Shown here: piece by piece, positions 12,350-61,400 of the stretch | Layout: every line of letters begins with the position of its first letter | Position numbering within the stretch: the stretch's first letter is position 1 | Assembly: GCA_002269645.1 (NCBI GenBank) | Contig: NIVC01002991.1 | Coordinates: forward strand, 62,922-126,921 | DNA: 64,000 nucleotides | Direction: 5' to 3' | Source of the DNA: Macrostomum lignano | Taxonomy: Eukaryota | The notes under the pieces: generated by a model | What the model was told of the DNA's origin: nothing | Seen by the model: the letters and a program-made list of their open reading frames with translations, nothing else | Databases searched by the model: none | Translations under genes and position numbers: made by a program

Positions 12350-13282
12350 AAATCAGGCGCCACCCTGAACAATCAGGCGCGACCCTGAACAATCAGGCAC
12401 ACAATGAACACTTAGGCGCCACCCTGAACAATCAGGAGCCACCCTGAACAATCAGGCGCCACCCTAAACAATCAGGCGCCACCCTGAACAATCAGGCGCC
12501 ACCCTGAACAATCAGGCGCCACCCTGAACAATCAGGCGCCACCCTGAACAATCAGGCGCCACCCTGAACAATCAGGCGCGACCCTGAACAATCAGGCGCC
12601 ACCTTGAACAATCAGGCGTGACCCTGAACAATCAGGCGCGACCCTGAACAATCAGGCGCCACCCTGAACAATCAGGCGCCACCCTGAACAATCAGGCGCG
12701 CCACCCTGAACAATCAGGCGCCACCCTGAACAATCAGGCGCCACCCTGAACAATCAGGCGCGACCCTGAACAATCAGGCGCGCCACCCTGAACAATCAGG
12801 CGCCACCCTGAACAATCAGGCGCGACCCTGAACAATCAGGCGCCACTCTGAACAATCAGGCGTGACCCTGAACAATCAGGCGCCACTCTGAACAATCAGG
12901 CGCGCCACACTGAACAATCAGGCGCCACTCTGAACAATCAGGCGCCACTCTGAACAATCAGGCGCCACCCTGAACAATCAGGCGCCACCCTGAACAATCA
13001 GGCGCGCCACCCTGAACAATCAGGCGTCACCCTGAACAATCAGGCGCCACCCTGAACAATCAGGCGCGACCCTGAACAATCAGGCGCCACTCTGAACAAT
13101 CAGGCGTGACCCTGAACAATCAGGCGCCACCCTGAACAATCAGGTGCCACTCTGAACAATCAGGCGCCACTCTGAACAATCAGGCGCGACCCTGAATAAT
13201 CAGGCGCCACCCTGAACAATCAGGCGCCACCCTGAACAATCAGGCGCCACCCTGAACAATCAGGCGCCACCCTGAACAATAG
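12350..13282. repeat. 20-bp minisatellite
   Basis: CACCCTGAACAATCAGGCGC with 22-bp GC-insertion variants, about 45 copies. Confidence 0.95.
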
Positions 13283-28965: not shown

Positions 28966-30274
28966 CTCTGCGGGCCCTGTTCTGTTTGGGGTTACTTTGT
29001 GGAATCGAACCTGGGACTTTAATCGGTGGCGCGAGAATTGTTCTATTAATCAGTTCCTCGCTCTTTCAGTTTGTATCCAAGCAGAACGCAGCATCTTTTT
29101 GAGCAAGTTAAGATGAAGCCCCAATAGGAAGGCGGGATATGTGTAACGTGCACTTTGAACTTTTGCTTTAACCGAAAGTTGAAACCTTTAAGGTTCTTTA
29201 CAAACTATATTTAGTACACATTATACTGATTGTAAGCACGCGCTAATAGTTCATCATCTTGAGCTTTTTTGATCATTCTGCCATATTTTTTAGTTCTTTT
29301 TTCTCAATCCTCCTCTGAGAATCGAGTACTCATTTCTCATGGGAATTTCTTAGAAAGTCTTCACAGACAGAGGGCTGCTTGGGTGGAGCAGAACCTGCTG
29401 AGGGGAGCAGACAGAGGCTGGCTGCCCTGCCAGCCAACCAGACTAGCCCTGCTCCCTCAGCCAAGGCTCCTCATTGGCTGAGCTCTGAGCGATGGAGCCT
29501 CACAGCCGCCCCTAACACCTTTCCTCACAGAAGGAACAGCGCCCACTGGTCCGCACCGCGACCCCCGCTCCTCCCCGCCTCTCGCCTCCTCTTGTGCCTA
29601 CACAAAATCCCCACTTAATCCTCTCCTCGCTTCTTCGACAGGAAGACAGGAAAACACAAATCATTTTTATCTGGCATTTCTCCTCGGCCAACTCTGCCGC
29701 GGTCTGTCAGTCCAGCCTTCAGCTCCCCATCAGTCTAATTCATTATCCTCCGATCCGCCTTACCTGAGCTGCTCGCATCCCCTGTTTATCAGCTCGGACT
29801 CCGCCTGCCGCACACGCCAAGGTAAGCCTGCTAATCCTCAGGGCTCGCCGCAGCCGCTGTTTAGAAATTTTCCCCTTCACAATGCGAGGATAATCCGGCC
29901 TGCAAGCTGGATTATAATCCCCCCGCTGGCACCCCCCCCCCCCCCCCTGAATCAGCTGAGCTGCAAATGAGGAAGCAGATTTCTTCCTCAGATATGCCCG
30001 TCCGTACCTCTCTGCTGTGCTCAGAGACAATAAGGATAAATTATTATCGCTAGGCTTGGTTAGGTGAAGATTTCTCAATCCGACTAGAGACTGGTCTTAG
30101 CTGCTCACGATTCATGAGCTGATGTAGTTGTGTGCTCAATAAGGGTCTGAGGGGGGACACGGGGATTTGTGACCGATTAGGGGCCAGAAGATTAGCACTG
30201 CTTGAGCCCCAGCTCAAAGGCCTTCAGGATTGGGGTGGGTGGGTGAGGAGTAAGCCAAGGCCCTGCATGGGTTT

Positions 30275-31133: not shown

Positions 31134-34100
31134 ATGGACTGGAACACAGCCTACCAGACTCAGACTCATCAGCAGCAGGCTCAGCTTCATCATCACCACC
31201 ACCAGCACCATCATAGTTTGGTTGGCCAGACTCAGTTTGGCTACCCGTTGCCCGACATGTCGAGCAGCGTCGGAGGCGGCATATTCGGATGCGGCAACGA
31301 CAGCGACTTGACTGTCGGTCTTGGCGGCGGCTCAGCTATCGGCGGATTTTCCACCGGAGCCACCTGCGGCTCTGGCGGCAGCGCCGGCGGCGGCGGTAGA
31401 GGCGACGGAATGCCTCTGCAGACAGCGGCGGCGGCGGCGGCGGCGGCCCAAGCGCATCACGAGATGCTGCAGCACCATCCGGCACTGTCTGCCTATGCAA
31501 GTGAGTTTGAAACAAGGGAAATAGGAGCCTAATATAGATTCGAGAGTTTTGGCGGTTGGTGCGGCCAGTTGAAGGAGCGGAGGTAGAGGCTTGAGCAGCT
31601 CACTGAAGGAGCGGGGGTAGAGGCTTGAGCAGCTCACTGAAGGAGCGGGGGTAGAGGCTTGAGCAGCTCACTGAAGGAGCGGGGGTAGAGGCTTGAGCAG
31701 CTCACTGAAGGAGCGGGGGTAGAGGCTTGAGCAGCTCACTGAAGAAGCGGGGGTAGCGGATTGAGCAGCTCACTGAAGGAGCGGGGGTAGCGGATTGAGC
31801 AGCTCACTGAAGGAGCGGAGGTAGCAGATTGAGCAGCTCACTGAAGAAGCGGGGGGTAGCGGATTGAGCAGCTCACTGAAGGAGCGGGGGTAGCGGATTG
31901 AGCAGCTCACTGAAGGAGCGGAGGTAGCGGATTGAGCAGCTCACTGAAGGAGCGGGGGTAGCGGATTGAGCAGCTCACTGAAGGAGCGGAGGTAGCAGAT
32001 TGAGCAGCTCACTGAAGAAGCGGGGGGTAGCGGATTGAGCAGCTCACTGAAGGAGCGGGGGTAGCGGATTGAGCAGCTCACTGAAGGAGCGGGGGTAGAG
32101 GCTTGAGCAGCTCACTGAAGGAGCGGGGGGTAGCGGATTGAGCAGCTCACTGAAGGAGCGGGTGTGGCGGATTGAGCAGCTCACTGAAGAAGCGGGGGTA
32201 GCGGATTGAGCAGCTCACTGAAGGAGCGGGTGTGGCGGATTGAGCAGCTCACTGAAGGAGCGGAGGTAGCGGATTGAGCAGCTCACTGAAGGAGCGGAGG
32301 TAGAGGATTGAGCAGCTCACTGAAGGAGCGGGGGGTAGCGGATTAAGCAGCTCACTGAAGAAGCGGAGGTAGAGGATTCAGAGGCCTGTGAATTAGAAAA
32401 CACTTCAAGAAGTCTCTAGTAAGTTTCCAGAACAGGTCAAGGTTGAGGCTGAATGTTGTCAACACACCTCGAAAGGAAAGCGATCACATCTTCTAACTGA
32501 AATAATTGCTTCGGGGCATTTATTTGCTGCTATTAACTTGATTACCTTACCGCCTCCGCCCTCAGCCATCTTTCTCGATACTCAGCTTGATTAAACCGAA
32601 AATCCAGTCCGTATCCCCTACTACCTGTAATCCCCCCACTCGATGCAACTATTACTTTTTACTCACAGAAAATCCGCCTCGAGGCGGCTATAGGAGAAAA
32701 TGAAAGATTTCGTCAACACAAAGAAATGCTCGCGGTCATTGAGCACAGGCGCTGGCTGCATCAGGCCGAATCCATCACTGACCACCTGAGTGCCGCGTTC
32801 AATGGAATGCTCAGATTCATGAGCATACTTGACTGCTCTATAGGGGGGGGGGGGGGGGAGGCCAATCCGACCTTTCAGAGCGCCCGACACGCGACCCCCC
32901 CAGCCTCTCGCGTGGATGCGAAAGAATTTTATTTGGCTACAAAGGGGCGCGCCTGTCTGTATAGAGAATAATCCCAGCGGATTGAAGGTCTGCTTTGAAT
33001 GCTGCAGATTAAAACAAAACGGCGCGGCCCCCCCACCCGCCGGGCTCGCCGAGCCGAGAGAATTCGAGAGGGGGCGGCTGCGGCTCCCCGCTGCTTGTTG
33101 GCCCACCTGGGGCAGCTGCTCAGACACGAAAGGCAGTGCGTGTAACACAACTGAACTCAACCCATTAGCGCCATTTTCTCAAGCCCGAACGCAACCCCAT
33201 CGGATTAACTTTGCAGCCCCTGTGCGCAAGCAGCGGCGCGAGAGGACCACCTTCACCAGGGCGCAGCTGCAGATCCTGGAGGAGCTGTTCGGCAAGACCA
33301 AGTACCCGGACATCTTCATGCGCGAGGAGGTGGCGCTGCGGATCAACCTGCCGGAGTCGCGGGTGCAGGTCTGGTTCAAGAACCGCCGGGCCAAGCAGCG
33401 CCAGCAGCAGAAGCAGAAAGAGGCCGGCGAGAAGGCCGCCCACTGCGGCGTGTCGGCCGCCTCCGCCGGACAGCCGGTCGGACACGCCGGACACGCCGGA
33501 CACGCTGGACACGCCGGACACGCCGGACACGCCGGACACGGAGCGAAGGCCGTCTCCGTCTCGGCTTCCGCCGCGCCGCTGGCCGGAGGCTCCGCACTCG
33601 CCGCCGCCACCGCTGCCGCTGCGGCCGCTGCCGCCAACATCGGCGGCGGAGGCGGCGGCGCCGGCATCGACATGGCCGGCTGCCTCCACGACGCCGGCGG
33701 TGGCGCTGTCAAGTGCGAGGACGTCGACTCGAGCAGCCCGTCGCCCGCCAAGACGCTCAGCCTGCCCGGCTCGGCCGAGGCCTCCAAGCGCAGCCCCGCC
33801 GTCTCCGCCAACGGCCACGCCGCCGCCGCGGCTGCCGCTGCCGCGCACTTCCTCACCGACTCTACCGGACACTCCGGCGCCGCCGGCTGGGGCGCCTCGG
33901 CCGCCGGACGCCTCGCCGGACCCAACAGCCCGACTGACGGCGGCTCCGCCTACGCCACCTGCGTTCAGCAGCAGCACCGCAGCGCTGCCGCAGCCGCAGC
34001 CGCCGCGGCCGCTGCCGCTGCCTACCACAACCAGACCTACGGACAGTACAGCGCTACAGGCTACCCTCCGTATGACTACCTGCGACCTGCTGCCTACCCG

Positions 34101-34160
34101 CAGCAGCCGCCAGACTATGACTATCAGGGCTGGTCATCGCGCAAGCTGCAGCTGCTGTAG
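31134..34160 (+). CDS. Otx: Otx/orthodenticle K50 homeobox protein, copy A (2 coding exons, about 436 aa)
   Basis: Exon 31134-31500 (donor GCAA|GTGAGT, phase 1) plus exon 33217-34160 (acceptor TTGCAG|CC). The junction reads [21 protein letters not shown]...WFKNRRAK, an Otx-type homeodomain with K50. The C-terminus [15 protein letters not shown] resembles the Otx tail. Confidence 0.93.
31560..32385. repeat. 34-bp minisatellite in the Otx-A intron
   Basis: GAGCAGCTCACTGAAGGAGCGGGGGTAGCGGATT, about 24 copies. Confidence 0.95.
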
Positions 34161-37131
34161 CTCACTGACTTTAGCAGGAATATTCCATATATAGTCCGGC
34201 CTAAACAGTCTCTGTGTATTAATTAATAAGCTTATCTGGATTTGTATGCTGCATGCCTCCGCCACCGTTTTCTTACCGATCATTGAAATTCTGGCCCCAA
34301 TGCAGAAGAAAAATGCTTGGCTGTTACATGTAAGCCTCTTCAGTCTCCCTATATATTTGTTTTTGTAATTTCCTTCTCTGAATTTTGCATAGTATTGCAA
34401 CTTTTCTCACTAAAATGTAGCGTATAAAAATTGAAGAATAGCTTACCGCCTGTGTTCGTGCTCTGATCCTTAGTCTGCCGCAAATATATTTGCTCGTCTG
34501 TTAACAATATTTAATGTGCTTTTTGTCGCTTCGTTTCAGTTTGCTGCGTTGCTTGGATTGATTGGCATACTGGCTGTTGGAGGTTGTTTGAGGCTGTTTG
34601 AGAGCTGTTTGAGGTTGTTTGGAGCTGTTTGAGAGCTTTTTGAGGTTGTTTGGGGCTGTTTGAGAGCTGTTTGTGGTTGTTTGAGGCTGTTTGAGAGCTG
34701 TTTGAGGTTGTTTGGGGCTGTTTGAGAGCTGTTTGAGGTTGTTTGGGGCTGTTTGAGAGCTGTTTGTGGCTGTTTGAGAGCTGTTTGAGGTTGTTTGGGG
34801 CTGTTTAAGAGCTGTTTGAGGTTGTTTGGGGCTGTTTGAGAGCTGTTTGAGGTTGTTTGGGGCTGTTTGAGAGCTGTTTGAGGTTGTTTGGGGCTGTTTG
34901 AGAGCTGTTTGAGGTTGTTTGGGGCTGTTTGAGAGCTGTTTGAGGTTGTTTGGGGCTGTTTGAGAGCTGTTTGAGGTTGTTTGGGGCTGTTTGAGAGCTG
35001 TTTGAGGTTTTTGAGAGCTGTTTGAGGTTGTTTGGGGTTGTTTGGGGCTGTTTTAGAGCTGTTTGAGGTTGTTTGGGGCTGTTTGAGAGCTGTTTGAGGT
35101 TGTTTGGGGCTGTTTGAGAGCTGTTTGAGGTTTTTGAGAGCTGTTTGAGGTTGTTTGGGGTTGTTTGGGGCTGTTTTAGAGCTGTTTGAGGTTGTTTGGG
35201 GCTGTTTGAGAGCTGTTTGGGGTTGTTTGGGGCTGTTTTAGAGCTGTTTGAGGTTGTTTGGGGGGGCTGTTTACAGGGGTTGTTTGGGGGGTTGTTGGAG
35301 GTCTGTTTGTGGGTTTGTTTGAGAGTCTTTTGGAGGCTGTTTGGGGGCCTGTTTGGGGCCTGTTTGGGGGCCGTTTGGGGGTCTTTCTGGGGGCTGTTTG
35401 GGGGCTGTTTGGGGGCTGTTGGGGGGCTGTTTGTGGGCTGTTTTAGGGCTGTTTGGGGTTCTGTTTAGGGGCTGTTTGTGGGCTGTTTGAGGGCTGTTTG
35501 GGGGCTGTTTGGGGCGCTGTTCTAAGACTAGAATTTTTCTGACGCTATACTTTTAACAAAAAAACGAACTACAACTGAAATGCATCCGTCTTATATAGTT
35601 ATTCTTAAACATACAGTATTAGTTTTCATTGCTCAATATATATTTCAAATAGATATATATGTATATATACTTGCATTTCGCACTTATAAAAATCAGTTTT
35701 ATTGTTAACCAGTTGCCTAGATTCTGTCTTTATGCAGAATGATTTAAATTTAGAGACGCCACAAAGCGGTGCATAGCTACAGGCCTTTACTAAACATTGA
35801 CAGTTCTGGACAATCTGCAGAGACAGATGCTTAAAAACATGTTTAAATTTCTAATTTTAACAAACAGAGAGACCAGAGTGACAGGTGTGAGTAAAGTAAG
35901 TAATATCGCAGAAATTCGTGCCAGAAGCTATAATAATTACTGTCTACAAGGAGAGCATTTAAACAAAATTTAAACAATAATAACTACACTTATTTAGAAC
36001 GCATTCCTATGGCTGTACATATTGCTCATCGCTAGGGGACTCGAACGCATAAGGAGAATATATAGAAAAGCTTAATAGTGAAATCCCGGATGAAAACCCG
36101 ACACAAAAACGGTTTGCACTTTGACGCAAAGTCCCAACAATGACCGAACAATAAATCATTAATCCGATATCGATCAAGTGTCAAAGAGTTCACAGCAGCT
36201 GCAGCTTGCGCGATGACCAGCCCTGATAGTCATAGTCTGGCGGCTGCTGCGGGTAGGCAGCAGGTCGCAGGTAGTCATACGGAGGGTAGCCTGTAGCGCT
36301 GTACTGTCCGTAGGTCTGGTTGTGGTAGGCAGCGGCAGCGGCCGCGGCGGCTGCGGCTGCGGCAGCGCTGCGGTGCTGCTGCTGAACGCAGGTGGCGTAG
36401 GCGGAGCCGCCGTCAGTCGGGCTGTTGGGTCCGGCGAGGCGTCCGGCGGCCGAGGCGCCCCAGCCGGCGGCGCCGGAGTGTCCGGTAGAGTCGGTGAGGA
36501 AGTGCGCGGCAGCGGCAGCCGCGGCGGCGGCGTGGCCGTTGGCGGAGACGGCGGGGCTGCGCTTGGAGGCCTCGGCCGAGCCGGGCAGGCTGAGCGTCTT
36601 GGCGGGCGACGGGCTGCTCGAGTCGACGTCCTCGCACTTGACAGCGCCACCGCCGGCGTCGTGGAGGCAGCCGGCCATGTCGATGCCGGCGCCGCCGCCT
36701 CCGCCGCCGATGTTGGCGGCAGCGGCCGCAGCGGCAGCGGTGGCGGCGGCGAGTGCGGAGCCTCCGGCCAGCGGCGCGGCGGAAGCCGAGACGGAGACGG
36801 CCTTCGCTCCGTGTCCGGCGTGTCCGGCATGTCCAGCGTGTCCAGCGTGTCCGGCGTGTCCGACCGGCTGTCCGGCGGAGGCGGCCGACACGCCGCAGTG
36901 GGCGGCCTTCTCGCCGGCCTCCTTCTGCTTCTGCTGCTGGCGCTGCTTGGCCCGGCGGTTCTTGAACCAGACCTGCACCCGCGACTCCGGCAGGTTGATC
37001 CGCAGCGCCACCTCCTCGCGCATGAAGATGTCCGGGTACTTGGTCTTGCCGAACAGCTCCTCCAGGATCTGCAGCTGCGCCCTGGTAAAGGTGGTCCTCT
37101 CGCGCCGCTGCTTGCGCACAGGGGCTGCAAA
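33210..37131. repeat. Inverted repeat with arms of about 940 bp and a 2.0-kb spacer (the two Otx second exons)
   Basis: 33210-34158 is the reverse complement of 37131-36192, apart from 2 synonymous substitutions and differences inside the GHA repeat (9-bp indel plus silent changes). Confidence 0.97.
34575..35520. repeat. 31-bp (10/11-mer compound) GT-rich minisatellite between the Otx genes
   Basis: GAGGTTGTTTGGGGCTGTTTGAGAGCTGTTT, degenerating to GGGGCTGTTT units. Confidence 0.95.
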
Positions 37132-37373
37132 TTGGAAAATGAAAACTTAGAGAAACTCGAGTTCGTCCTATGAATAGTGTGACAGAGTTCAGTCTTACTG
37201 GAGTAGGCGGTCAGGGCCGGATGATGGAGCATCTCGTGATGAGCCGGCGGTGTGGCGATCCCGACGCCCAGGTTGCCCATCATGGCGAAGCCCTGCTTGC
37301 CCAGTCCGCTGGCGCCTCCCGGATGCGGGTTATAATTGAACTGCGAGCCGTGGTGATAGCCGCTCCAGTCCAT
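36190..37373 (-). CDS. Otx: Otx/orthodenticle K50 homeobox protein, copy B (2 coding exons, about 369 aa)
   Basis: Exon 37373-37199 (MDWSGYHH...HPALTAYS, donor TCCA|GTAAGA), 74-bp intron 37198-37125, exon 37124-36190 with the same homeodomain and tail as copy A and a TGA stop. AATAAA on the minus strand at 35703-35698. Confidence 0.93.
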
Positions 37374-38740
37374 CGCTCTACAGCTGGAATGAAATCACCA
37401 AACCTATAGTTGGTATTCAGTTCCCGATTTGAAGAACGATGAAGAACACCGGCAGCTGCAGTTCTTGTGTCGATAAAATACTAAATAGAGAGCCAGAGAG
37501 GCCTGAGGCACGAGGAAACTTGAGCTCAGGACGATGGGTCCCACTGACACCGGGGCGAGTGGGGCGAGCGTGCGCCGAGTTAATGGGTCGGCCTCGGATT
37601 TCGGATAGACAGGTAGAGAGACGCAGACAGCGTATATGGGAGTTTTAGGGCGAGTGGCGTTGGGTGAAACTGTCGCTTGAACCCCACTCCCCCGTCACCT
37701 TCATCAGCACGGGCTGGGGGATCTCTAATCCCCAGCTGGAAAGAGGAGAGGCTGAGACTAAAAGCAGGCGGCCTGTCTGCAGGTGCACCACGCGGGGCCG
37801 CTGAACGGAGTTGCCGCATCGTAAGTCGAGTCGTCGCCATCGCGATGGATTTAGTAGGGGATTAGGGATATTCGGGTGGGGGCGGCGGGTCAGCGAGAGT
37901 TGGGGAACTTTCGGGACGGCCGATGGCTGTCAGAGGAGATGCTGAGGGGGGGGAAGTTTTAGCGAAATGGGAAGCCGAGTTTCGGAGCCCCATCGGAGCC
38001 ACCCCCCCCCCCTGTTGCCCCACCTGAGCTCGAGTTTGTCTTCTATTCATATTTTCCCTGCAATTGTCAGGGGAGAGACAAGCGGAGGATGGGCTCAAGC
38101 CATTTTTTTCATCAGCTGCCTCTCTCGCCCTGCTTTTGCCCCGTGTCTCCCGCCTCTTGCCCGGGGGCCCTGCCATTCGAATGGAAGGGATTAGCGAGAG
38201 GATTAAAGGACTGAAAACATGTCACTCTGATGGCCCGGGAGGGGTTGGGTGGGGTGGGTCGAGAGAGAGAAATAGAGGAAGGGAGCAGCGCCTGCAGCCC
38301 CCAGGGTGCAGAGACTGGAGACAAAAACTCGCTGGCGTAAGCAGCGACAGCTCGGCGCAGCTTCATCCCCAATGGCCTGCCCTCTCCCGTATAGCCGCAC
38401 AGGGTCTAAATAGGTTTTTCTTTTGCGCACGCAATTTCGGGATAAAAATGAACGGCGGTTTGCTAAAAATTTGTTAAAATCCGTTTTAAAACGGAATGAC
38501 GGAAAACAGAAGCTATGGAGATGAAGGCGGGACCCGGAGTCGAAGGGGGCGGAAATAGGGCGGATTTGTCGTAAAACTGGGCGGTAAGGGGCGGATTTAT
38601 TAATAAATAAGGAGGAAAACTTTATAATTAGAAATTTTACGAAACAAATGAGGCAAAAAATCTGTGGGAAGCAACAAAAATAGTAACCCAATTTGGTTGA
38701 GCAAAATGACCAGACAATGGGAGAATGCTGTTAAATCGAT

Positions 38741-38750
38741 ACTCACCTGA
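38741..38750 (-). promoter_or_regulatory. Candidate donor of a non-coding first exon of Otx-B
   Basis: Minus strand CAG|GTGAGT at 38747/38746, with tandem acceptors TTCCAG| (37383) and CTGTAG| (37377) before the ATG. The pairing is inferred. Confidence 0.4.
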
Positions 38751-39199
38751 ATCGTTTGACACTTGAGATTTTAATAATAGAAAAGGCGGCCTTCGAAGCC
38801 TCAAAGCTGGAGATCTTCTTCTAGAAGGAGCCGGGCAAGGATGGGAGTCCCGCTGGAGGGGATTAAGAAGGGATTTGGCGAGCGGGTTGGCGACTGCGGG
38901 ACGAAGCGAATCGGGCAGCTGTGTTTGGACTGGACACGATGGGGCAGGGAGGCTGGAATAAGGCGCTAGCAGAAGCAGGCGGAAGATAAGCTCAAGAAAT
39001 CTGCAGCGCCGGGTTGGAGCTTGGCGCAGAAACTGTTTCTGTCGCGGAGGCCGGCCAATCCGGCGAGTCCAAGCGAACCGATTGGCTGCTGGAGATGGCG
39101 AGGCCACCCCTGTGCAGCTGCTCAAAACCTGCCTGCCTGCTCAACTGCTGCAGCCAATTTCTTTTTGCCCTGGTTACTGAGTTAGACAAGTGAAAAAAC

Positions 39200-42412: not shown

Positions 42413-43124
42413 AGTATTAATGGAGATGGCTACAGATAAACCTTGGCTCATAAATCACAACAGGTAAAATAGAGAAATGAAATTCTCGATGAAAGTTTTC
42501 TTAAACAAAAGTTAGGGATCGAGAGGCAGACAGGACGTGACTCCCTGTTGTTCGAATAATTCGATTTCTGAGTTGGCGACTTTCTCACTCGCTCACTGAG
42601 TTTGACTGGCGGCCGGTTCTGACAGAAGGTCGTGCGGCGAGAGAGGCCAGCTCAAGATCGGTATCAAATTAAGCCTGGGCATATGGAACTGCTGATCGCA
42701 ACAGATCCCAGCAATTTTTTATTGCCTCCCATTGCGAGAGAATGGGGAAATTCGGATGAGGAGGTGGGTAAGGGAAAAGGGGGCCAGAAGCTTTTGATCA
42801 TGCACCCACAGTCGAAATCCCAGCGAAGATGGCCAGATGACAGGTGCCCTTATCTTCCCTTGGCCAGTCGCTTCTTTGACAGAATTTTCTCAGCCAAGAA
42901 GGAATTGAAATCTGCGTTGCATGCTTGAGAAATCGGATGCGTGAAATTTTCTGGCAAAGAAATAAATCTTATCGGACGCAGGGCTCCACTTGAGTGGATT
43001 GAAATTCCGCAAATATGGCGCCATTCGGCTTAGCAACTGCAGGTTGTGCTTAAAGACTTTTTCTGAGTCTTTGAAATTCAGAATAATTTCGAATAGTTTA
43101 AATTAAAGTTAGAGAGAGTCTTGG

Positions 43125-43745
43125 CGCCGAATAGGAGGATTAGCGCCGAATAGTGGGATTAGCGCCAAATAGAAGGATTAGCGCCAAATGGAAGGATTAG
43201 CGCCAAATAGGAGGATTAGCGCCAAATGGAAGGATTAGCGCCAAATAGGAGGATTAGCGCCAAAGGAGAATTTTAGCGCCAAATAGGAGGATTAGCGCCA
43301 AATGGGAGGATTAGCGCCAAATGGGAGGATTAGCGCCGAAAAGGGGAATTAGCACCAAATAGGAGGATTAGCGCCAAATAGAAGGATTAGCGCCAAATAG
43401 GAGGATTAGCGCCAAATAGGAGGATTAGCCCCAAATGGGAGGATTAGCGCCAAATGAGAATTTTAGCGCCAAATAGGAGGATTAGCGCCAAATAGGATGA
43501 TTAGCGCCAAATTAGAGGATTAGCGCCAAATAGAAGGATTAGCGCCTAATGAGAAGATTAGCGCCAAATAGGAGGGTTAGCGCCGAATAGGAGGATTAGC
43601 GCCAAATGAGAGGATTAGCGCCAAATGAGAGGATTAGCGCCAAATGAGAGGATTAGCGCCAAATGAGAGGATTAGCGCCAAATGAGAGGATTAGCGCCAA
43701 ATGAGAGGATTAGCACCGAATAGGGGGATTAGCGCCGAATATAAG
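43125..43745. repeat. 19-bp minisatellite carrying GGATTA
   Basis: GGATTAGCGCCAAATAGGA, 32 units, 26 with a perfect GGATTA. Confidence 0.95.
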
Positions 43746-47830: not shown

Positions 47831-48940
47831 AATGACCAGCGACCAGTGCTAGTGATGACAAAGTCAAATATTTTGGTGATATAAATAAATAAAAGCACAA
47901 GACAACAACCGTTATTTTGCTAGTATCTGATTACACTGATTTGCAAGACAATTAAATATCCTAAAGAATAAGCTTAATCTGGTCTTTAAGTTGTTATTTA
48001 GACACGGGGGCTGATGAGACAGGGGTACTCGAAGAACAGTCTTCAATAACAACATTTATAAATGGCAAGTCCTATTAAATAAATAGACAAGCAAATTATT
48101 GCAGCTACACATAAAATAAAGGTTGATTTTATCCAGACCCCGTCATCAATATTTCTAGCCCCCCCAGCATTGGGACAACATCAACAAATTTAACAAAACT
48201 AAAAACACGGTCAGGACACGTCTGTAGTTAATTTATTAAAAAAATACGCGCAAACTTTTTTATAATCATCAAAATTTACATTCATATTAGACTACTCAAA
48301 ACAAAACAGTTAGTAGCGAGGGAGGGACCTGCCAATTGAAAATATATGCGCTCGGAAAAAACTGTGGGCTTTTCAACTTTTTAAGCACGCTTTAGTGCGA
48401 AAATTTTAGCATAGATTAATATAAATTAGAAGAAAAAAATTAATAAGGACAAGCGAACAGACACCAATTAAAATTTTATTGTCAAAAAAGCGATTATGCA
48501 ATTTTTGAATGCATTAATCCAATCCAATACATTTCTGACGAGGAACAAAACGAATAAAAGGGCTAATCAACAAATAAAACTTAGAACAGTTATATCATAG
48601 CTTGCATGCGAAATACAACTGGATAGAGCTGTGAAGATCGAATCGAATACCGAACAGGCAGTTCTGATGTAGCATTTAAATTTGCCAGAATTTTAACACG
48701 GTCAAATTTTGCTATAATTTGTCTGAACAATCATATCAATGAATATTAATGAATTTTTGTAAATTACTAACTGGAATCAGTGCATACTGTTTTGCGTAAT
48801 TAATGAGCAAGCAATTATTAAGGTGTTATAAAATTATCCACTGCCGAGAAAATACCAAGTAGCGTATTACGAGGAACTATTCAATTTTCCTTTACCTTGA
48901 ATAGTTTAGCAATTCATTGTATCCACTTTATAGTTTAATA

Positions 48941-49393
48941 TAATTGACTACACCTGCTCTAACGGCCAGATGTGCAACCGACAGCTCAGCCGCATGCTGC
49001 GTACGGCTGTTCAGTCCAAGGACTGGGGGGGGGGTCACCACACACCCTCAATTACCCCAGCTAATGCTGGCACCCATTTTACAGCTGGGTGAACTGAAGC
49101 AATGCAGAGTTAAGTGTCTTTGCTCAAGGACACAAATCGTTCCGATTAGGATTGGGAGTCGAACCCCGACCTTCAAGTCGTGAGTCGTGGGAGTAACCAC
49201 TAGGCTAAAACCCTTTAATATTAAAATAGATTAGCAATTCGTTTTATTCCCTTTACTACGGGACTGTAGCCTAGTCCCCCCTGCCCCCAGTCCCCGGACC
49301 GAACAGCCGTACGCAGCCTTCAGATGCGCCGCGCAATAGCTGCGGCTGAGCTGTCGGTTGCACATCTGCCACTTGGGCAGGTGTAATCAATTA
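48941..49393. mobile_element. Foldback/MITE-like element with long terminal inverted repeats
   Basis: Left arm TAATTGACTACACCTGC...CAGATGTGCAACCGACAGCTCAGCCGCA...GCTGCGTACGGCTGTTCAGTCC...GACTGGGGG (48941-49034) matches the reverse complement of about 49277-49393, with a roughly 22-nt indel. The flanks are AT-rich. Confidence 0.75.
49035..49210 (-). mobile_element. tRNA-derived SINE with a CORE-like central domain
   Basis: Minus-strand A box TAGCCTAGTGG (49207-49197) and B box GGTTCGACTCC (49165-49155), followed by GTGTCCTTGAGCAAAGACACTTAAC...CAGCTGTAAAATGGG, which resembles the CORE domain. Confidence 0.7.
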
Positions 49394-49754
49394 TTGTTAT
49401 TATTAATATTATTATTACTACTATTATGTAATATTGAATATATTAGCAATCCATTCTAATAGCCAACAAAATTAAAACAAAAAAGAATCCGGATTTCAAG
49501 TTAAGCCTACCAAAGCACAGTACCGATAGCAGCAAAATTATTTTTAGTCCAGAAAAAACGGAAAAATTTTGCAAGATCGATATTTCAATCATTAGTTTAG
49601 TTTGGCGCCTATTGCAATACAGAGGAGTCAAGCCGATGGGGTGTTGGGTAGCCTAGGACAAGCTCTTAATAACCCGACTAGTGCAGCTGAGCCGCGCTTG
49701 CTAAAAAGTTACAAACGAGTGCTTATGGGCCTGTTGCCTGACTGTTTTGGCTAG

Positions 49755-52235
49755 CTAGTTCCAAAAGTCGCCAGCAGCAAAAGCAGACTGCTGTTGAGCA
49801 GCGTATTGCTGCGGCTGCTGCTGCTGCTGCTGCTGTTGCGGAAAGCCAGCAGAATTGGCGGCACCTTTGAAGTTTAATCCGGCCATCTGGCTCTGTATCT
49901 GTGGGAATTGCCGCAAACGGTTAATAGTACTAATACTATTATTATTATTATACATTATTAGCTAAAGTTACTGAATTATTGTGGACATGGCGGGCCGCTG
50001 ACAGAGCAAGTAAAAGGGCAAAGAAAGTTCAAATGGGCTTTGAAAATTTCATTGTTGAAAAAAGCAGTTGCAATGGCAGACACCCAAGCCGTGGAATGGG
50101 ACATTCGAAGTTGAAAATCCCAATTTGAAGTCTTTCATGGTTCGAAGCTACGAATTCAACGGAACGGGGAGAATCTCATCTGGTTTGTCTATGGCCTAAT
50201 CCCATCTTTTGAAAGGCAATTTAAACATTTGATTAATAATTGTATATTGTTACCCCTCCTTTGCGGGCAGAAGGGGCGGGAGTGGTAACAATATACAATT
50301 GCTTTTGTCAGCGAAGTCGACAATAAAAGGCGATTCAAGTTCAGCCTTGATCCTATGCTCTTTCTTTACCAGCGAAATGGCCGTTTATGGCCAAACCTCA
50401 CCAAAAATAAAGCCTGAGAACTCGAAACGAGGCCAATTACCCAGTTCACAGGCCTGAATCTGTAGATTAAGTCTACTCGATCATTGCCTGCTCTTTTGGT
50501 GTCTATGGCGAGAACCGCGATCTAGGCCTTTCTCCCATAGACAACAAAATAACAGACAAATAATATATGCAGAGAATTTCAAAGCAAGTATTCTGGCCAC
50601 AGAGAACTTCATTTATAGTATATACCATAGACATGGATCTTATACTTAAGTATTGCGATGAAATATATTTTTTTCGTCTATGTCCATAGACTACTGACGA
50701 TTAGTTTTCAGTAGTGCAAGCGAACATTGTTTGTCCCCGAGTCATTATTGGGTGTCATTTTCTATTCATTGTCTGAATGGGGAGTGGCCAGTGGCCTATC
50801 TAGTGTATATAAGATCTATAATCTATCCTACAATAAAGTGCTAAAAATTAGTATAGAGGAAACCAAATAAAAAATATTAAGCAACACTTACTTGTAGCAA
50901 ATAAGCAGACTGATTATTGACATAGCCTGGTGGCTGAAATCCATAGTGCTGCTGCTGCTGCTGCTGTTGCTGAGAAGACGGTGTCGGCACGCCGCCAAAT
51001 TGCGGCGGACCAAACTGCCCACCTGTTGAGTAGAGAGCGCCAGCAGTTTGACTGTACAGAGCCGAGAACTGCTGCTGCTGCTGCTGTTGAGGTTGATGTT
51101 GCTGCTGCAGAAATGGATATTGTTGCTGCTGCGAAAATGAATATTGCTGTTGCTGCTGCGGCATAGGCTGGTAGCCAGTTGAATTGGCTACAGAAGCTAG
51201 TTGAGGAGTACTCATCGAGTATTGCATCCCGCCAAAGTGTTGCTGCTGCTGATTGTGAGCTAGAAATCCGCCGCCTCCACTAGAAGCAGCAGCAGCAGCA
51301 GCGGTATTCTGCTGACCATACAAAGCCATGATAGAATCTTTCATAGATTTCTTTGGAGCAGCGGCGGTGTTGGCAGAATTAGAAGAATCGCTGGCAAACA
51401 GGTCGGCAGCAGTGGCGGTCGTGGCGCTGCCCTCGCTTAAGAATGCCAAATCGTTGGCGTGCGAGCTGACGACTCCGCCACCGCCACCGCCGCCGCTAGA
51501 GAAGTCGCCAAATCCGTCATCGGCCAGACCGCCAAGCAGATCTGGCGGCGGCTGCTGCGGCACTGCTGAAGGAGGTGCCGGCTGCTGTGGCTGCTGCGGG
51601 GGCGGTTTCTCAGGCTTTGATTGAGACGCAGCCTGCGGCGGAGGCTTCACTGCCGCGGTGGTGTTGCCAGCAGAGCGCCTGGCTGGCGCGGGCGCGGGCG
51701 CCGGCAGCTTCGGCGACACGCCGTCAGCGGCGGCAGAGTTAGCAGCGGCGGCAGCTCGTCGCTGAGCAGTGTTGGTCTTGAGCAGATCGTACACAGCAGC
51801 TGGATCGGGTTTAGGCAGCACCCAGTCCCTGGCTAAGTAGCGCTTCTCCTCATACTTAGCCTTGATGAACTGCTCAAGCGTGGCGTCCGTCTGCGGCCGA
51901 CGGAATCCATCCGGCACGTTGGCCTCGTAGGCGGCTCTGGCTAGCGAGTTACCAATAGCGGCCACCCCAGCCACCTGTTCGGCTGTCCAGGAGTCCAAGT
52001 TGACAGATTTCACTCGCGAGATGTGCACGCCCAGCTTCCTGTGGATGCCGGCGCATCTGATGCAGAGGAATACGCCAATGTTCCAGCTGGCCCAGCGGGG
52101 ACTTTTAGCATCGCAGTCGGCGCAGTACTTATTGTCCTCGTCTCTTAGCAGCATGCCCAGCACGTCCTGGAGTAGGTCCTTCTCGCTCTTTGCAGCTGCT
52201 AGCTTGCCAGAGCGGTGTCCAGTGCTGGATGACAT
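49755..52235 (-). CDS. SMAP: Stromal membrane-associated protein (SMAP1/2-like ArfGAP), 2 coding exons, about 495 aa
   Basis: Exon 52235-50892 holds the ArfGAP zinc finger CADC-x16-CIRC and [20 protein letters not shown]...KYEEKRY, with donor CAA|GTAAGT. Exon 49898-49755 (acceptor CCCACAG|) encodes [10 protein letters not shown]...GDFWN*, similar to the SMAP C-terminus. Confidence 0.9.
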
Positions 52236-52892: not shown

Positions 52893-54913
52893 TTATCAAG
52901 CAATATAAACTTAAAGTCGCTTTTATTAGAAACACAGGTTATAAACAATGTGGATTATGTAAAAAGTGAATTAAAAAATTTGTAGGCCCCCTACTCAAAG
53001 TTTTTAAGTATATTAGATCAAGATAAATTGAGCAAACAAGTGTTAGCAAAGTAAACAAAGTAAACAAAACAGAGTGCAAAAAGTATATGTGCACTTCTTT
53101 TCTAAAAGACTCAGAGTAAATGACCTACACCACCATGCACCAGCTAAGTATTTTATATTCAAATCAATATAGGCCTATTCAATTCAAATATAAATAAGCC
53201 CCCTACCAATGACAAAGTTATCAAATCAAACTAAATATAGTAACTAACAATAGTATTAGGCCTAATGTATAATGTTGTATGTTGTATTTATTAATTTTTA
53301 AATATAACTAGGGCATGAGATATTTAGACAATCTATTTGTCTTGTCTTAGTCTGGGTTTTATGCCTACTAATTTGCTTTGTTAATGCTCATTGTGCTGGC
53401 ACAGTGATAGTAACAAAAGAAATAATTTTGTATTAATTAACAACTCTTCAAAAGAGCACAAATAAAGGCTCTCCTGATCCTAGAGCAAGCAAAAGTCAAC
53501 TAAAAATGTAAGAATAACTTAATAAGATATGTCGTCATAACTGACTAAAGTCCCTAGGCCGCCTAGCTCTAGGGCCTCGGCTTAAATAGTGATGACACTA
53601 AATCTGCAAAACAAAAATCATAAGATTTTTTATTTTTTTCACGTTTGAGTCACCAGTCACACAATCATTATTAATATTGGTAAATGAGAAATGTGATATA
53701 TTTTTGTGATGATTTCGTGATACTCTCATTTCTATAGATTTCAAGGACTACTTAAGTCATCCTTGATAAATAAATTTCTTTCGGGCTGCTTTACACTTTT
53801 TTAAACAAAACATGTTGAACGAATTGCAAAATTAGACTTAAAAGTAAATTCAGCTATTCCTTACGCTTATTTATCGCTTTTAAACTTAAAAAACTTCACT
53901 ACCTTTGATAAAACATTGTTTACAGAAAGTATCAATGTTGCTTTTAATTTATTATTGATTTTATATTAATTCCAGTGACTATTCAATATTCGAGATTTTG
54001 TTGTGATCTGTTTGATCAAAAACACATAGTACATGCATGAGTGTTAAGACAGCGAAAGGTGCTTTTTTGTAGTAAATCAGCTGCAATAATAGCAATGAAG
54101 CTTACGTTAGCTAAATCTTGTTTGCATGGATTCCTGCCTCCTGCGCAGCGCACTATACGGCACTAGCATATATTTCAATGTTATAAATAATTTTCACCAA
54201 ACAATTAGTTAATTATTTTTGAGCTTTAGAATAAATCATGTATCTTATTTCAAATTCTTATCTTAATGGATATTAGAGGTAGGTAGAAAGCTTAGAATTT
54301 TAGCAAAATTTTCTTTTTAGTCACACAGTTATGTAGTCAAGTTAAGCAGTGTGCTTATGTGCCGTTAGTTTGTTAATTTGTCAGTAGCTAGATGCACGTT
54401 TTAAGGACCGTTTCTTTCTATACAGTCACAGAAATAGAAAAATGAGTATTAAATGAATAAATCGCTTTACTTTTTGATTTATCATATTGGCCTACCTATC
54501 ATAAACCACTTGCTTTATGAATTTTAAATGATGCCTTTCTGGTATATCTAAATTGTTAAATGTTCTAAACACATAAAATATACTTCTCCACGAAATTAAT
54601 TTTTAACCTAATTTTAACTTCAATATCATGGCCCAGTTGTTCCATTTTTTCTCTAGACTTTCTCTACTTTTCTACAACTTATAAACAAAGTTTACTTAAG
54701 AGTAAAAATAAGTTGTGCTTGTTTAATAACTCTTGATAAATATTTCCCTATTTTCTATATCTTTTTGAAGTCGAAGACCTACTTTATCAATAATTGTTTT
54801 CAATAATAAATAAACATTCTAGTTTTTTACTGTAAGTAATCCAAACATTTTTTCTTTCCAGTCGCCATAGTTTCAAGGCTTCAACAACCAAAATTATCAT
54901 TCAAGGCTTGGCA

Positions 54914-56684
54914 ATGTCTGGTGAAAACAAAGACAATGGTGACCCCTACTACTGCTCGGAGCAGATTCAGATCCCGCCCCCATTGCCAGACATCCTGAAG
55001 CAATTCACCAAATCTGCAATCCGCACCCAGCCGCCAGATGTGCTGGCTTGGGCAGCCGCTTACTTCCGTGCCATGGCCGACGGTGAAACTCCGCCAGTGA
55101 AGGAGCGCCTCGAGATGGCAACCGCAACGCAGAAGACGGACACCGGTCTCACTCCCGGTCTGCTCCGAGTGCTCAACAAGCAGCTGGGCCCAAAGAAGCA
55201 AGTTGAAGTAAGCGACATCACAGAAAAATGGAAGGCGCTAAATCTGCCGGAAGAGCGTCTGCAGGAACTGTTCCAGGTGAATACTGAATGCCATTCAGGG
55301 TGCAATCAGCGTATTTTTGTGATATTCGTTTTAGATAGCGAATCCTTTATTAAAATACAGTATGCATACATTGTACCACCAGGAATGTGCTCTTAGCGGC
55401 TCGATAGTTCTAGCACAGTCCGCTCCGTTCAGCGGGTCAAAAATATTTTTATGACAGGCTGTTTTTTAGAGGAACTTGGCTCACCTAGCACCTGACTTGG
55501 TTACCCTAGCACCTGACAATTGGCTCACCTAGCACCTGACTTGGTTACCCTAGCACCTGACAATTGGCTCCCCTAGCACCTGACTTGGTTACCCTAGCAC
55601 CTGACTTGGCTCCCCTAGCACCTGACTTGGTTACCCCAGCACCTGACTTGGCTCCCCTAGCACCTGACTTGGTTACCCCAGCACCTGACTTGGCTCCCCT
55701 AGCACCTGACTTGGTTACCCTAGCACCTGACAATTGGCTCCCCTAGCACCTGACTTGGTTACCCCAGCACCTGACTTGGCTCCCCTAGCACCTGACTTGG
55801 TTACCCTAGCACCTGACAATTGGCTCCCCTAGCACCTGACTTGGTTACCCCAGCACCTGACTTGGCTCCCCTAGCACCTGACTTGGTTACCCCAGCACCT
55901 GACTTGGCTCCCCTAGCACCTGACTTGGTTACCCCAGCACCTGACTTGGTTACCCCAGCACCTGACTTGGCTCCCCTAGCACCTGACTTGGTTACCCTAG
56001 CACCTGACAATTGGCTCCCCTAGCACCTGACAATTGGCTTCCCTAGCACCTGACAATTGGCTCACCTAGCACCCGGCGCCCCTAACAACTAAATCAATTT
56101 GCACCTTTTTGCACTGAGTTTGCGCCTTTGCAACTGAATTGACTCCCTTACAACTAACTTGGCGGCCTCTAGCAATTGAATCATTTGTCGCCCTAGCAAC
56201 TGAAATTGCGCCCTAGAAACTGAATTGTCGTCCTTGCAACTGAATTGAAGCCCTTAAAACCTAACTTGGCGCCCCTGGAACCCAAAACGACCCTGCTGTA
56301 TACCCTGTAACCAGCAGCAACACAACACCAAAACAAAATAACGCAAAGACTGGCGAACTCCTAACTACCCAGATCGGCGACTTCACTGGCAAAGTGGAAT
56401 GGCTGAAATTCTTCGCCGTCGCTTGCGCCTCCCTGTGCAGCGACCTGACCGGCACCATGAAGCTCATCTGCGAGCAGCTCACCGCCGATCCTGAGGGCGG
56501 CCCGGCTCGAGTGAATTTCGACACTTGGAAGCGATTGTACACCTACCTGTACCAGCTGAACTCAGAGGCCGATCCGCAAGTGATGGAGGCGGCTCTCGGC
56601 TACCTGGCCTCGGATGTCGAGCGTCAGAAAGGCGTCATCCAGCCCAGGAACTTCCTGCACCAGGACTGCCCGCCGTTGCAGTGA
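54914..56684 (+). CDS. ROPN1L: Ropporin-1-like protein (RIIa-type docking domain, radial-spoke/AKAP-binding), 2 coding exons, about 224 aa
   Basis: Exon 54914-55276 (QIQIPPPLPDILKQFTKSAIRTQP...TQKTDTGLTPGLL, donor CAG|GTGAAT) plus exon 56373-56684 (CTAAC branch point, CCCAG|; EWLKFFAVAC...ICEQLTADPEGGPAR). Confidence 0.92.
55480..56075. repeat. Alternating 21-bp minisatellite in the ROPN1L intron
   Basis: CTAGCACCTGACTTGGTTACC alternating with CTAGCACCTGACTTGGCTCCC. A degenerate GCAACTGAATTG array follows to about 56280. Confidence 0.95.
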
Positions 56685-58493: not shown

Positions 58494-61400
58494 TCACTGC
58501 CGCATGGTGGCCCTATTCATAACATCGTCAAGGGACACTGGGTGCCATTGGCCCTCAGTCAGCCAGTAAATTACGCCGCGTTCAACGCAAATTTGTAGCC
58601 GACCAAAATTGAACACCTGCTTGCCGTGATGCCGGCGGCCGGTGGGGGCGAACACGATGCCGTGCTCCTGGGCCCGGCGTTCTAGAAGGTCCCTGGCGCC
58701 CAGCAGGCCGTGATTATAGTTCACTACAGTGGCTGGCTGAGCCTGCGGCGCTACGGAAGAGCTGGAAGCGGTGGCCGCGGCGGCGGCAGCGGCAGCGGCG
58801 CCGGCGGCTACAACGGCAGCCGGTTCCTGGCCGGAGAAGGCGGCGTCCATCAGGCGAAGGGCCTGCGGGATGGTGAATTAAATAATTAGAGTAGAAATAT
58901 ATTAAAATAGAGGAGAGGGAGGTGAGAAAGCAGGATGGAAGAGGAGAGATGAGAAAAGAGAGATGAGAGGAGAAGAGAGATGAGGGGAGAAGAGAGATGA
59001 GAGGAGAAGAGAGATGAGGGGAGAAGAGAGATGAGGGGAGAAGAGAGATGAGAGGAGAAGAGAGATGAGGGGAGAAGAGAGATGAGAAAGGTTAGGAAAG
59101 AGGAAGTGAGGGTAGAACAGGCAGAGAAAGTATAACGATGCAGAGCGGGTAGGCGAAAATCGGGTGCACAGACCTGACCCAGCTGGTGCTGCACCCCGGG
59201 CAGGTCCAGACACGCAGGTGGCAGCTGGTCCCGCCAGCCGGCGTACCAGGCGGCCACCTGGGCCATGTCGACACCGGGGCTGGCTAGCCAGGCCGACAGG
59301 GCCCGGTGAAATCCCGGGAAGAAGCCGCGCTCGAGCAGCGAAGCAATCTGCTGCGGACTGAGCAGATCCCACCAGGCCTTGCACCAGACCCACTGCTCCA
59401 GCGGCTGGCCAGACGGGTCAATTCGCATCCCGGACAGACAGTCGATCAGCTTGGGCAAAACGTGCCGCTGCAGGAAGGCCGCCAGCAGTTGGGGTCGCAC
59501 GGCGCCGCGCCATGGCGTTAGGACGCCTTTGGCACTCAGGTCGTCCGGGCGCCACTGGCCAAAGCACTGGCCGAGCTTCTGCAATACCTGCAGTATTCGT
59601 GTGTTAAGGTATTGGTTATACAGGCTTTGGCATCATTGCCAGATCCGCAATATTTAGCAGCAGAAAACTACGGATAAGCATCAGATAGCAATGGATAAGC
59701 ATCAGATCCCAATGGATAAGCATCAGATCCCAATGGATAAGCATCAGGTCACAATGGATAAGCACCAGATCCCAATGGATAAGCATCAGGTCACAATGGA
59801 TAAGCATCAGATCCCAATGGATAAGCATAAGAACCCAATGGATAAGCATCAGGTCACAATGGATAAGCATCAGGTCACAATGGATAAGCATCAGATCCCA
59901 ATGGATAAGCATCAGATCCCAATCGATAAGCATCAGATACCAATGGATAAATACCAGGTCACAATGGATAAACAGCAGTCTCTCACCTGCTCGTGCATGG
60001 CATCCAGCGCCAGCTCGGCAGACCAGGGCTGCAACCACTCGTGCACAGGCTGCGGATCCCTAGTCGGATCCCACAGTTGCAGCTCCCTCTGCAGCGCGGG
60101 CTTCACAACGGTATTAATCAGATCTTCAATGCCGGGCGCCTGGCCTCGCAGCGCCTGCACCAAAGCCAGAGCTTCGGCCGGTTGCCTCGGACTCCACTGG
60201 GCCAGCGCGCGTCGAACCTGCGGCAGCAGCGACTCGGACAGGATGGCGTCAATTGAATCGTTGGCAGGCGCCAGAGCTTCGCGCACCAGCCGAGCGCAAG
60301 CGGCGCCTCTGCCGGGCTCTAGCAGAGGTTGCCAGCCATCCAGAGAGCGCCTAGCAGCCGGTGTAACCATAGCAGCGGCTAGCGGCCGGTACGCGGCCGG
60401 CGCTGACTGCAGAAACTTCTTGGCCAGGTCGCACACGTCCGGCAGGCCGGCGCCCCGGTTAGCAACCGAGTCGTAGGCGTCCAGCAGCCGGATGAGGCTG
60501 TCCAACTCGGCTAGCTGAACAGCCCGACGGCCTCGCTGCAGTCGCTGGGTCTCGGCTCGCAGGCTGGCCAATTTGTCGCGATCCTCCCGCTGCTGCCGAT
60601 CGGTTCGAACGATTTCAGCCTCGGCTGCGTCGGCCAATCTGGCCAGGTTGTGCATCAGGGCGGGACAGTCGAACCGGCACTGGCCACCCTGCTGCTGCTG
60701 GCCCTCGGCTGCTGCCGAACCGAGCGCGTCATCGTCCGCGCCGGCCGCCGATCGGGATAGCGCCGAATAGCCGTCGTACACCCGCTGCTGAGGCCCGGTC
60801 ATGTCGATCACCTGGATAGAATATTGGGTAGATACGATAGCTGGGATTAAACGATAACTACGAACTGGTATAGGGTAAAATTAACAACAACCTGAAGGAC
60901 TAGGGGTACTACAGGCTGAAAAACTGAATAGAGACAGTAACAATGGCCTGAAGGACGAGATCGAGAGAGGGGTAACAATGACCTGAAAGACAGGAGAGAG
61001 GGGGTAAAATGATCTGAAGGACAGGAGAGGGAGGAAAATAAAACCTGAAGGACTGTAGGAGAGGGTAACTATAACCTGAAGGACTGTAGGAGAGGGTAAC
61101 TATAACCTGAAGGACTGTAGGAGAGGGTAACTATAACCTGAAGGACTGTAGGAGAGGGTAACTATAACCTGAAGGACTGTAGGAGAGGGTAACTATAACC
61201 TGAAGGACTGTAGGAGAGGGCAACTATAACCTGAAGGACTGTAGGAGAGGGCAACTATAACCTGAAGGACGGTAAGCTGAAGGATTGAATGATACACCTG
61301 AAGCCTGAAGAACCAGAGGTAGCGTCGCGTGATTGAAGAAGGTCCGAGAATTGCAGGGAAACGGAGTTATAATTCACTCCACAATTGCATTGCAATAGAC

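Follow-up and report, generated by a model that had tools for sequence, protein, structure and literature searches.

How can two neighbouring genes that have diverged almost beyond alignment in their first exons, introns and flanking DNA share a second exon that is nearly identical from one end to the other? The question is raised by a 64,000-nt stretch of the genome of the flatworm Macrostomum lignano (assembly GCA_002269645.1, contig NIVC01002991.1, positions 62,922 to 126,921 of the forward strand), which we refer to as the window. The locus consists of two complete Otx-class homeobox genes of the Lys50 paired-like type, here called Otx-A and Otx-B, arranged tail to tail so that their stop codons are 2 kb apart. 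The identity of their second exons is best explained by non-allelic gene conversion acting between inverted paralogs that are close neighbours, a reading to which we assign a probability of about 0.85. The pair would then offer a clean, base-resolved example of how conversion decouples the histories of the parts of a gene, in a flatworm that serves as a model for regeneration and evolutionary developmental biology.

Identity between the two genes is confined to exon 2

A repeat search and local alignment of the window identified an inverted repeat of 949 and 940 nt, formed by positions 33210-34158 on the plus strand (arm A) and 37131-36192 on the minus strand (arm B). In a self-BLAST of the whole window these arms were the only high-identity dispersed repeat. 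Four substitutions and an in-frame 9-nt indel separate them. Each substitution is silent: C/T at 33254 (TTC/TTT), A/G at 33419 (AAA/AAG), and C/T at both 33515 and 33521, the last two lying inside a Gly-His-Ala (GHA) repeat. The indel supplies nine extra nucleotides to A (33479-33487), equal to one repeat unit, so that A has six GHA units and B five. In-frame translation yields exon-2 proteins that are identical save for this unit, and across 309 codons we counted four synonymous and no nonsynonymous differences (Sd 4, Nd 0), corresponding to a synonymous divergence (dS) of 0.017 and a nonsynonymous divergence (dN) of 0. The 637 nt from 33522 to 34158 are 100% identical between the arms, a length that grows to 671 nt if the two mismatches in the repeat are ignored.

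The limits of this identity are sharp. At the outer edge stands TTTGCAG, the final 7 nt of the intron before exon 2; at the inner edge stands the T of the stop codon, which is TAG in A (34158-34160) and TGA in B (36192-36190). Beyond these edges, comparison of A with B revealed no similarity in the 300 nt upstream of the acceptors (z = -0.2 relative to shuffles) or in the 500 nt downstream of the stops (z = -0.3), and the 1 kb upstream of the start codons, at z = 2.0, was counted as no more similar than shuffled controls. For the first exons only a partial alignment was obtained (z = 6.7). A possible homology of the B intron with the end of the A intron, which have ACTGAACTC in common, was rejected as not above chance.

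An initial annotation of this DNA had described the second exons as near-identical over a span that opens with TTTGCAG at the acceptor and closes with the stop codon's first base, had listed a TTC/TTT and an AAA/AAG change together with a 9-bp indel and silent changes in the GHA repeat, and had called the introns, untranslated regions (UTRs) and first exons unalignable or heavily diverged. Alignment bears out the two boundaries to the base and reproduces each of the differences, and the shuffle-level flanks and partially aligning first exons agree with the divergence described. The same annotation put the difference-free 3' part at about 620 nt; there are indeed no differences there, and the length given above replaces that figure.

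Both genes belong to the Otx class and appear to be functional

The homeodomain, as read from the translation, comprises 60 amino acids and is paired-like with Lys at position 50 (WFKNRRAK). Its best matches in the PDB are OTX2 (2dms, E 2.6e-32) and CRX (9b8u), and the top matches among the database candidates listed are OTX1/2/5, CRX and ocelliless. The earlier proposal of two inverted Otx-class genes is upheld, and they lie tail to tail. The exon-2 translation of A and B contains no SIWSPA-like (WSP) motif downstream of the homeodomain; the WSP motif is often lost in protostome Otx genes. A C-terminal end that includes DYDY is shared by the A and B proteins and by that of a third paralog, Otx-C, described below. 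A and B finish in WSSRKLQLL, an ending that resembles the Otx tail when compared at the level of motifs with WKFQVL and WPKFQVL, the endings of other Otx matches.

The introns of A and B interrupt the same codon, both in phase 1 and with good donors, five codons before the homeodomain, which begins 15 nt past the acceptor. The first exons are homologous throughout, from the start MDW through the motif QFxY-P to the end AHHEML(Q)HHPAL(S/T)AY, and MDW and QFxY-P recur in Otx-C. They are otherwise strongly diverged, with 122 codons in A and 58 in B, and A carries insertions rich in His, Gln, Gly and Ala. An M. lignano protein, UniRef A0A1I8IW91 (P0121), matches Otx-B at 100% over exon 1 and the beginning of exon 2, and its exon1-exon2 junction (...TAYS-T-PVRKQ...) is exactly the one modelled for B; the match identifies the window as M. 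lignano DNA. Of A and B, the protein collections searched contain this truncated Otx-B model alone: the C-terminal region encoded by exon 2 of A and B occurs in no protein there, an exon-2 query stripped of low complexity retrieved no protein match, and exact-protein look-ups for three open reading frames (ORFs) of the window returned no record.

Several features indicate that both genes are probably functional. The exon-1 ORFs of A and B are intact and their splice phases match. At the conserved 3' end of exon 1 (15 codons), the proportion of nonsynonymous differences between A and B (pN, 0.058) is far below that of synonymous differences (pS, 0.67). All four differences in exon 2 are silent, an outcome with a chance of about 0.26^4 = 0.005 under neutrality, and for B there is in addition the agreement with a database gene model.

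A third paralog shows what exon 2 can tolerate

Otx-C (BOX15_Mlig008535g2, P0002), on M. lignano contig NIVC01001954.1 (L001), serves as a control for the comparison of A with B. Its intron has the same position and phase as those of A and B, and no partner gene was found within 10 kb on either side. The homeodomain of Otx-C is identical in amino acids to that of A and B, yet 27-29 of 207 nt differ, with a pS at silent sites of 0.47-0.51 and a dS of 0.73-0.86. The remainder of its exon 2 is Gln-rich where A and B are Ala-rich, and is about 63% identical to theirs in DNA. The approximately 200 codons between homeodomain and tail are thus identical in A and B but under low constraint, because Otx-C differs there and shows this linker to be free to change. 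Since Otx-C also keeps the homeodomain with about half of its silent sites changed, the nucleotide identity of A and B is not attributable to selection on the protein.

The possibility that Otx-C is the orthologue from another species was rejected, since the M. lignano protein A0A1I8IW91 matches Otx-B at 100% including the 5' exons. An exhaustive representative protein search with A0A1I8IW91 returned Otx-C as the only Macrostomum-type relative, and the protein collections searched contained no Otx sequence from other Macrostomum species. A synteny comparison of the Otx-C contig with the window found a foldback/MITE-like repeat as the sole common non-Otx sequence, which is uninformative.

Two further observations concern the 3' end of the gene. 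The three paralogs use different stop codons (TAG at 34158-34160, TGA at 36190-36192, and TAA at L001 12497-12499), each placed right after an identical ...AAGCTGCAGCTGCTG. The annotation of P0002 leaves the frame just after YHNQTY (L001 ~12355-12375), and the conserved tail lies in the +1 frame; the change of frame reflects either a 1-nt indel in the assembly or a genuine frameshift in that copy.

Gene conversion probably accounts for a tract bounded by the exon

Several comparisons make the case for conversion. The tract is sharply bounded, with a dS of 0.017 in exon 2 against a pS of 0.67 at the end of exon 1 and shuffle-level similarity in the flanks. The relationships among the three paralogs within this genome are incongruent: exon 1 favours B with C (BLOSUM scores of 108.5 for B-C, 88.5 for A-B and 56 for A-C, with C exon 1 matching only B exon 1 in blastn), and exon 2 is near-identical in A and B. 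Silent sites in the homeodomain of Otx-C, finally, have changed to a pS of about 0.5. As the initial annotation had argued, a recent duplication would have copied the flanks too, and the unalignable or strongly diverged flanks and first exons lead us to set it aside. With neither recent duplication nor purifying selection accounting for the identity of exon 2, gene conversion, already proposed there as the cause, stands as the best explanation. A non-homologous copy-and-paste of the exon was also rejected, as it would not be expected to come as close to the exon ends as 7 nt on one side and 0 nt on the other.

We propose that A and B are old paralogs whose exon 1, intron, 3' flanks and upstream DNA have diverged to, or nearly to, the point where they no longer align. 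Exon 2 would have been overwritten from copy to copy, probably repeatedly, by non-allelic gene conversion, for which homologous recombination is the likely mechanism. Such recombination needs homology, and the limits of the tract would then mark the edges of the last homology that remains. Intron and UTR, being unconstrained, would have diverged and been disrupted by indels and minisatellite insertions. Constraint appears to be strongest at the two ends of exon 2, with the homeodomain on the 5' side and the Otx tail on the 3' side, so that homology and heteroduplex formation would persist as far as the acceptor and the stop; the tail extends to the stop codon and is conserved in Otx-C too. The outcome would be that two genes with different N-terminal exons and flanking DNA supply the same DNA-binding and C-terminal module. 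The idea that a shared module operates under two diverged promoters agrees with the sequence divergence; the part of it that concerns promoter function is conjecture, and A and B may well differ in regulation.

Conversion may have recurred and reached the third paralog

All of the substitutions and the indel lie within the first 312 of 940 nt (P = 0.012 for four independent events). This clustering in the 5' third suggests that two or more events took place at different times, and that the 3' 637 nt probably have a more recent coalescence than the homeobox end. Exchange appears to have involved Otx-C as well. A 95-nt segment of the homeobox (A, 33264-33358, plus strand; B, 37077-36983) matches L001 11635-11729 with a single mismatch, and the homeobox on either side of it differs at 13 of 45 and 13 of 67 nt (permutation P ~1e-5). 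The segment is probably a short, older ectopic conversion tract between separate loci. At informative silent sites of the homeobox, A and B have G or C where C has A or T in 12 of 14 cases (p = 0.013), and the GC content of third codon positions (GC3) is 85% in exon 2 of A and B and 75% in that of C.

On these grounds recurrent conversion is likely, though not proven. The initial annotation went further and spoke of ongoing conversion; the clustering favours more than one event, and "ongoing" is a plausible extension of it. Crossover between the arms is predicted to produce a flip-flop inversion of the 2-kb spacer, by which the two 3' UTRs would be swapped. In its most far-reaching form, which we regard as a long shot, the proposal would be one of recurrent conversion maintained by selection: an Otx network in which A and B, and C for the homeobox core, exchange the DNA-binding module while N-terminal exons, UTRs and enhancers stay private, and in which crossovers flip the spacer and swap the 3' UTRs. 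If true, duplicates rather than alternative first exons would have been used to build what is in effect one gene with two promoters, two N termini and one module.

Alternatives to recurrent conversion

Doubt is greatest about number. That exon 2 was converted or replaced just once, recently, with the sharing a historical accident and divergence to follow, is a possibility that we take seriously without favouring it. What we have is a single snapshot, in which a dS of 0.017 and four differences fit one event some time ago, and a single slippage event could have produced both the indel and the two differences in the repeat units, which weakens the test for clustering. Even so, the differences fall only in the 5' third (P = 0.012 for four events, approximately 0.04 for three), the 95-nt tract shared with Otx-C is independent and older and implies more than one exchange in the family, and the GC3 excess suggests long exposure to biased conversion. 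It is improbable that the arms owe their identity to the assembly, through collapse, cross-polishing or the joining of alleles or homeologs, with the true copies less alike or not both present. M. lignano is repeat-rich, 36% of the window is minisatellite, and a perfect 637 nt is what cross-polishing would yield; there is no reason, however, why an artefact should break off just where the splice acceptor and the stop codon lie, and the arms retain four substitutions and an indel, besides having unique flanks, their own intact exon 1 and their own splice signals. The structure of 0.94 + 2.0 + 0.94 kb is also shorter than ordinary long reads, a palindrome from a missed adapter would lack a unique, asymmetric spacer, and mis-joined alleles would match in introns and UTRs as well.

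The remaining explanations are weaker still. Minisatellite insertions are frequent and interrupt both the A intron and the spacer, which speaks for a recent whole-gene inverted duplication followed by fast turnover of non-coding sequence and exon 1, but the unique flanks that remain should then be about 98% identical and were found at shuffle level, and with a pS of 0.67 at the end of exon 1 this history is very hard to sustain. Equally slight is the chance of an RNA- or cDNA-templated conversion, in which the transcript of one copy repairs the other. RNA-templated conversion has been proposed for intron-containing yeast duplicates, and it would make sense of tract boundaries that coincide with the exon; an mRNA template would nevertheless include exon 1 as well as the 3' UTR, and neither is shared, identity ending at the first stop base, while 7 intron bases are common to both arms. 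To selection alone, that is, purifying selection and codon bias on an essential transcription factor, we give almost no credence: the homeodomain protein is 100% conserved among A, B and C, but the approximately 50% silent-site difference of Otx-C in the same homeodomain effectively refutes this account, and A and B also agree fully across the Ala-rich middle of the exon, which is unconstrained.

Against gene conversion, or against particular parts of the case for it, several points must be counted. As regards recurrence, the evidence comes from one genome, one snapshot and three Otx paralogs. Short-read cross-polishing could have inflated the 100% identity of the 3' part, at most by erasing a few differences. 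The common TTTGCAG may be part of the tract or merely acceptor consensus (the acceptor of Otx-C reads TTCCGCAG at this place). The exon-1 comparison of the three paralogs is based on short, low-complexity sequence, and the GC asymmetry, while compatible with GC-biased conversion, lacks an outgroup to polarise it. In the databases searched, neither a protein nor a transcript is annotated for Otx-A, whose expression is therefore putative; even in an inactive A, exon 2 would be preserved by conversion from B.

Comparison with known systems

The initial annotation had presented the locus as a candidate for an undescribed system. This claim does not hold, as concerted evolution limited to coding sequence and conversion between inverted homeobox genes have both been published (PMC3924832, PMC3199776, PMC8208926); the Otx pair is a new and unusually tidy case of a well-known process, and its mechanism is not new. 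In the linked Amy paralogs of Drosophila, ectopic conversion homogenises the coding sequence but leaves each copy's 5' and 3' flanks to evolve on their own, and the regulatory regions are distinct (PMC3924832). The Otx pair shares this combination of homogenised coding sequence and independently evolving flanks, but Amy is an enzyme gene converted over its whole coding region, whereas here the second of two coding exons alone is affected and exon 1 escapes. Dlxa and Dlxb of Capitella teleta form a tail-to-tail homeobox pair that is diverged save for a 98.4%-identical homeobox and 12 intron nt, for which the authors invoke conversion (PMC3199776). Both are lophotrochozoan developmental homeobox pairs, inverted tail to tail and mostly divergent. 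The Dlx tract, however, is ~150 nt + 31 nt in genes 18 kb apart, and the Otx tract covers ~940 nt, a whole terminal exon, across a 2-kb spacer.

The eutherian genes TPRX1 and TPRX2 are CRX/Otx-derived, of the PRD class, and flank CRX in inverse orientation; they have undergone repeated conversion in many lineages, more strongly over the homeobox part, which a breakpoint divides from less-converted downstream sequence (PMC8208926). They too are inverted homeobox paralogs of Otx-family derivation under conversion. That system is documented by a 34-species phylogeny and the Otx pair by one genome, and the polarity is reversed, since in M. lignano it is probably the 3' part that was homogenised last. 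On chromosome XIV of Saccharomyces, gene-containing inverted repeats known as flip/flop are continually homogenised and crossover re-inverts the spacer between them (PMC9731477). There the arms measure 4 kb and the spacer 24 kb with 15 genes; inversion of the 2-kb Otx spacer, in contrast, is predicted and not observed.

Whatever the number of events, the shared exon has practical consequences. The use of exon 2 in flatworm Otx phylogeny or in orthology calls, for example to planarian otxA and otxB, will mislead. Probes, RNAi and CRISPR guides directed at exon 2 will hit both genes, and exon 1 or the UTRs alone discriminate between them. Short-read mapping and annotation are unreliable at the Otx locus.

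Features of the window

The coordinates of the Otx pair and of the neighbouring genes are collected in Table 1. The spacer also contains a minisatellite with a period of ~31 nt (34573-35521) and a minus-strand AATAAA (35698-35703).

Table 1. Positions in the window of the two Otx genes, of their near-identical arms and of neighbouring genes
Feature	Positions	Strand	Description
Arm A	33210..34158	+	Acceptor TTTGCAG to T of stop codon; repeat search, alignment, self-BLAST
Arm B	36192..37131	-	99.6% identical to arm A, 9-nt indel aside; repeat search, alignment, self-BLAST
Otx-A coding exon 1	31134..31500	+	122 codons + 1 nt; phase-1 donor GTGAGT
Otx-A intron	31501..33216	+	1716 nt; 34-nt minisatellite at 31570-32378; unlike B intron
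Otx-A exon 2	33217..34160	+	Homeodomain 33231-33410 (Lys50), Ala-rich C-terminal region, end WSSRKLQLL, TAG
Spacer between stop codons	34161..36189		2029 nt; two mutually dissimilar 3' flanks
Otx-B exon 2	36190..37124	-	Protein as in A minus one GHA unit; TGA stop
Otx-B intron	37125..37198	-	74 nt
Otx-B coding exon 1	37199..37373	-	58 codons + 1 nt; phase-1 donor GTAAGA
Two upstream Otx-B exons, probably 5'-untranslated	~39174-39034, 38820-38749	-	Mapped from N-terminal extension of A0A1I8IW91
SMAP1-like ArfGAP, single exon	50877-52235	-	PDB 2crr, E 2.5e-53
Ropporin-1-like RIIa-domain protein	54908-55396	+	8j07, E 3e-42
TFIP11/STIP-like G-patch splicing factor	58886-62213	-	8ro2, E 9e-11

Minisatellites are abundant around the pair. 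Across the window (1-64000), 31 arrays with periods of 10-52 nt and up to 147 copies make up ~23.4 kb, or 36%. The Otx genes border a minisatellite-filled stretch of ~50 kb, whose ORFs of at least 130 amino acids yielded no other recognisable gene. A foldback/MITE-like element at 48940-49394 has terminal inverted repeats of ~95-120 nt and an internal, reverse-oriented tRNA-like 3' half; Rfam and tRNA (ARAGORN) scans of the window, this element included, were empty. A related copy at L001 3096-3347, 7 kb upstream of Otx-C, marks the element as a dispersed repeat and not as a sign of synteny.

The Lys50-homeodomain motif of Otx/bicoid type, TAATCC/GGATTA, is not enriched in the window-wide count outside minisatellite, and its occurrences cluster in three places. 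Five sites lie within 305 nt at 29616-29920, ~1.2-1.5 kb upstream of the Otx-A ATG, and include the palindromic GGATTATAATCC; five more lie at 37726-38865, in the 5' introns of Otx-B; and at 43124-43741 a site is present in 26 units of a 19-nt minisatellite (GCGCCAAATAGGAGGATTA). These clusters may be auto- or cross-regulatory sites.

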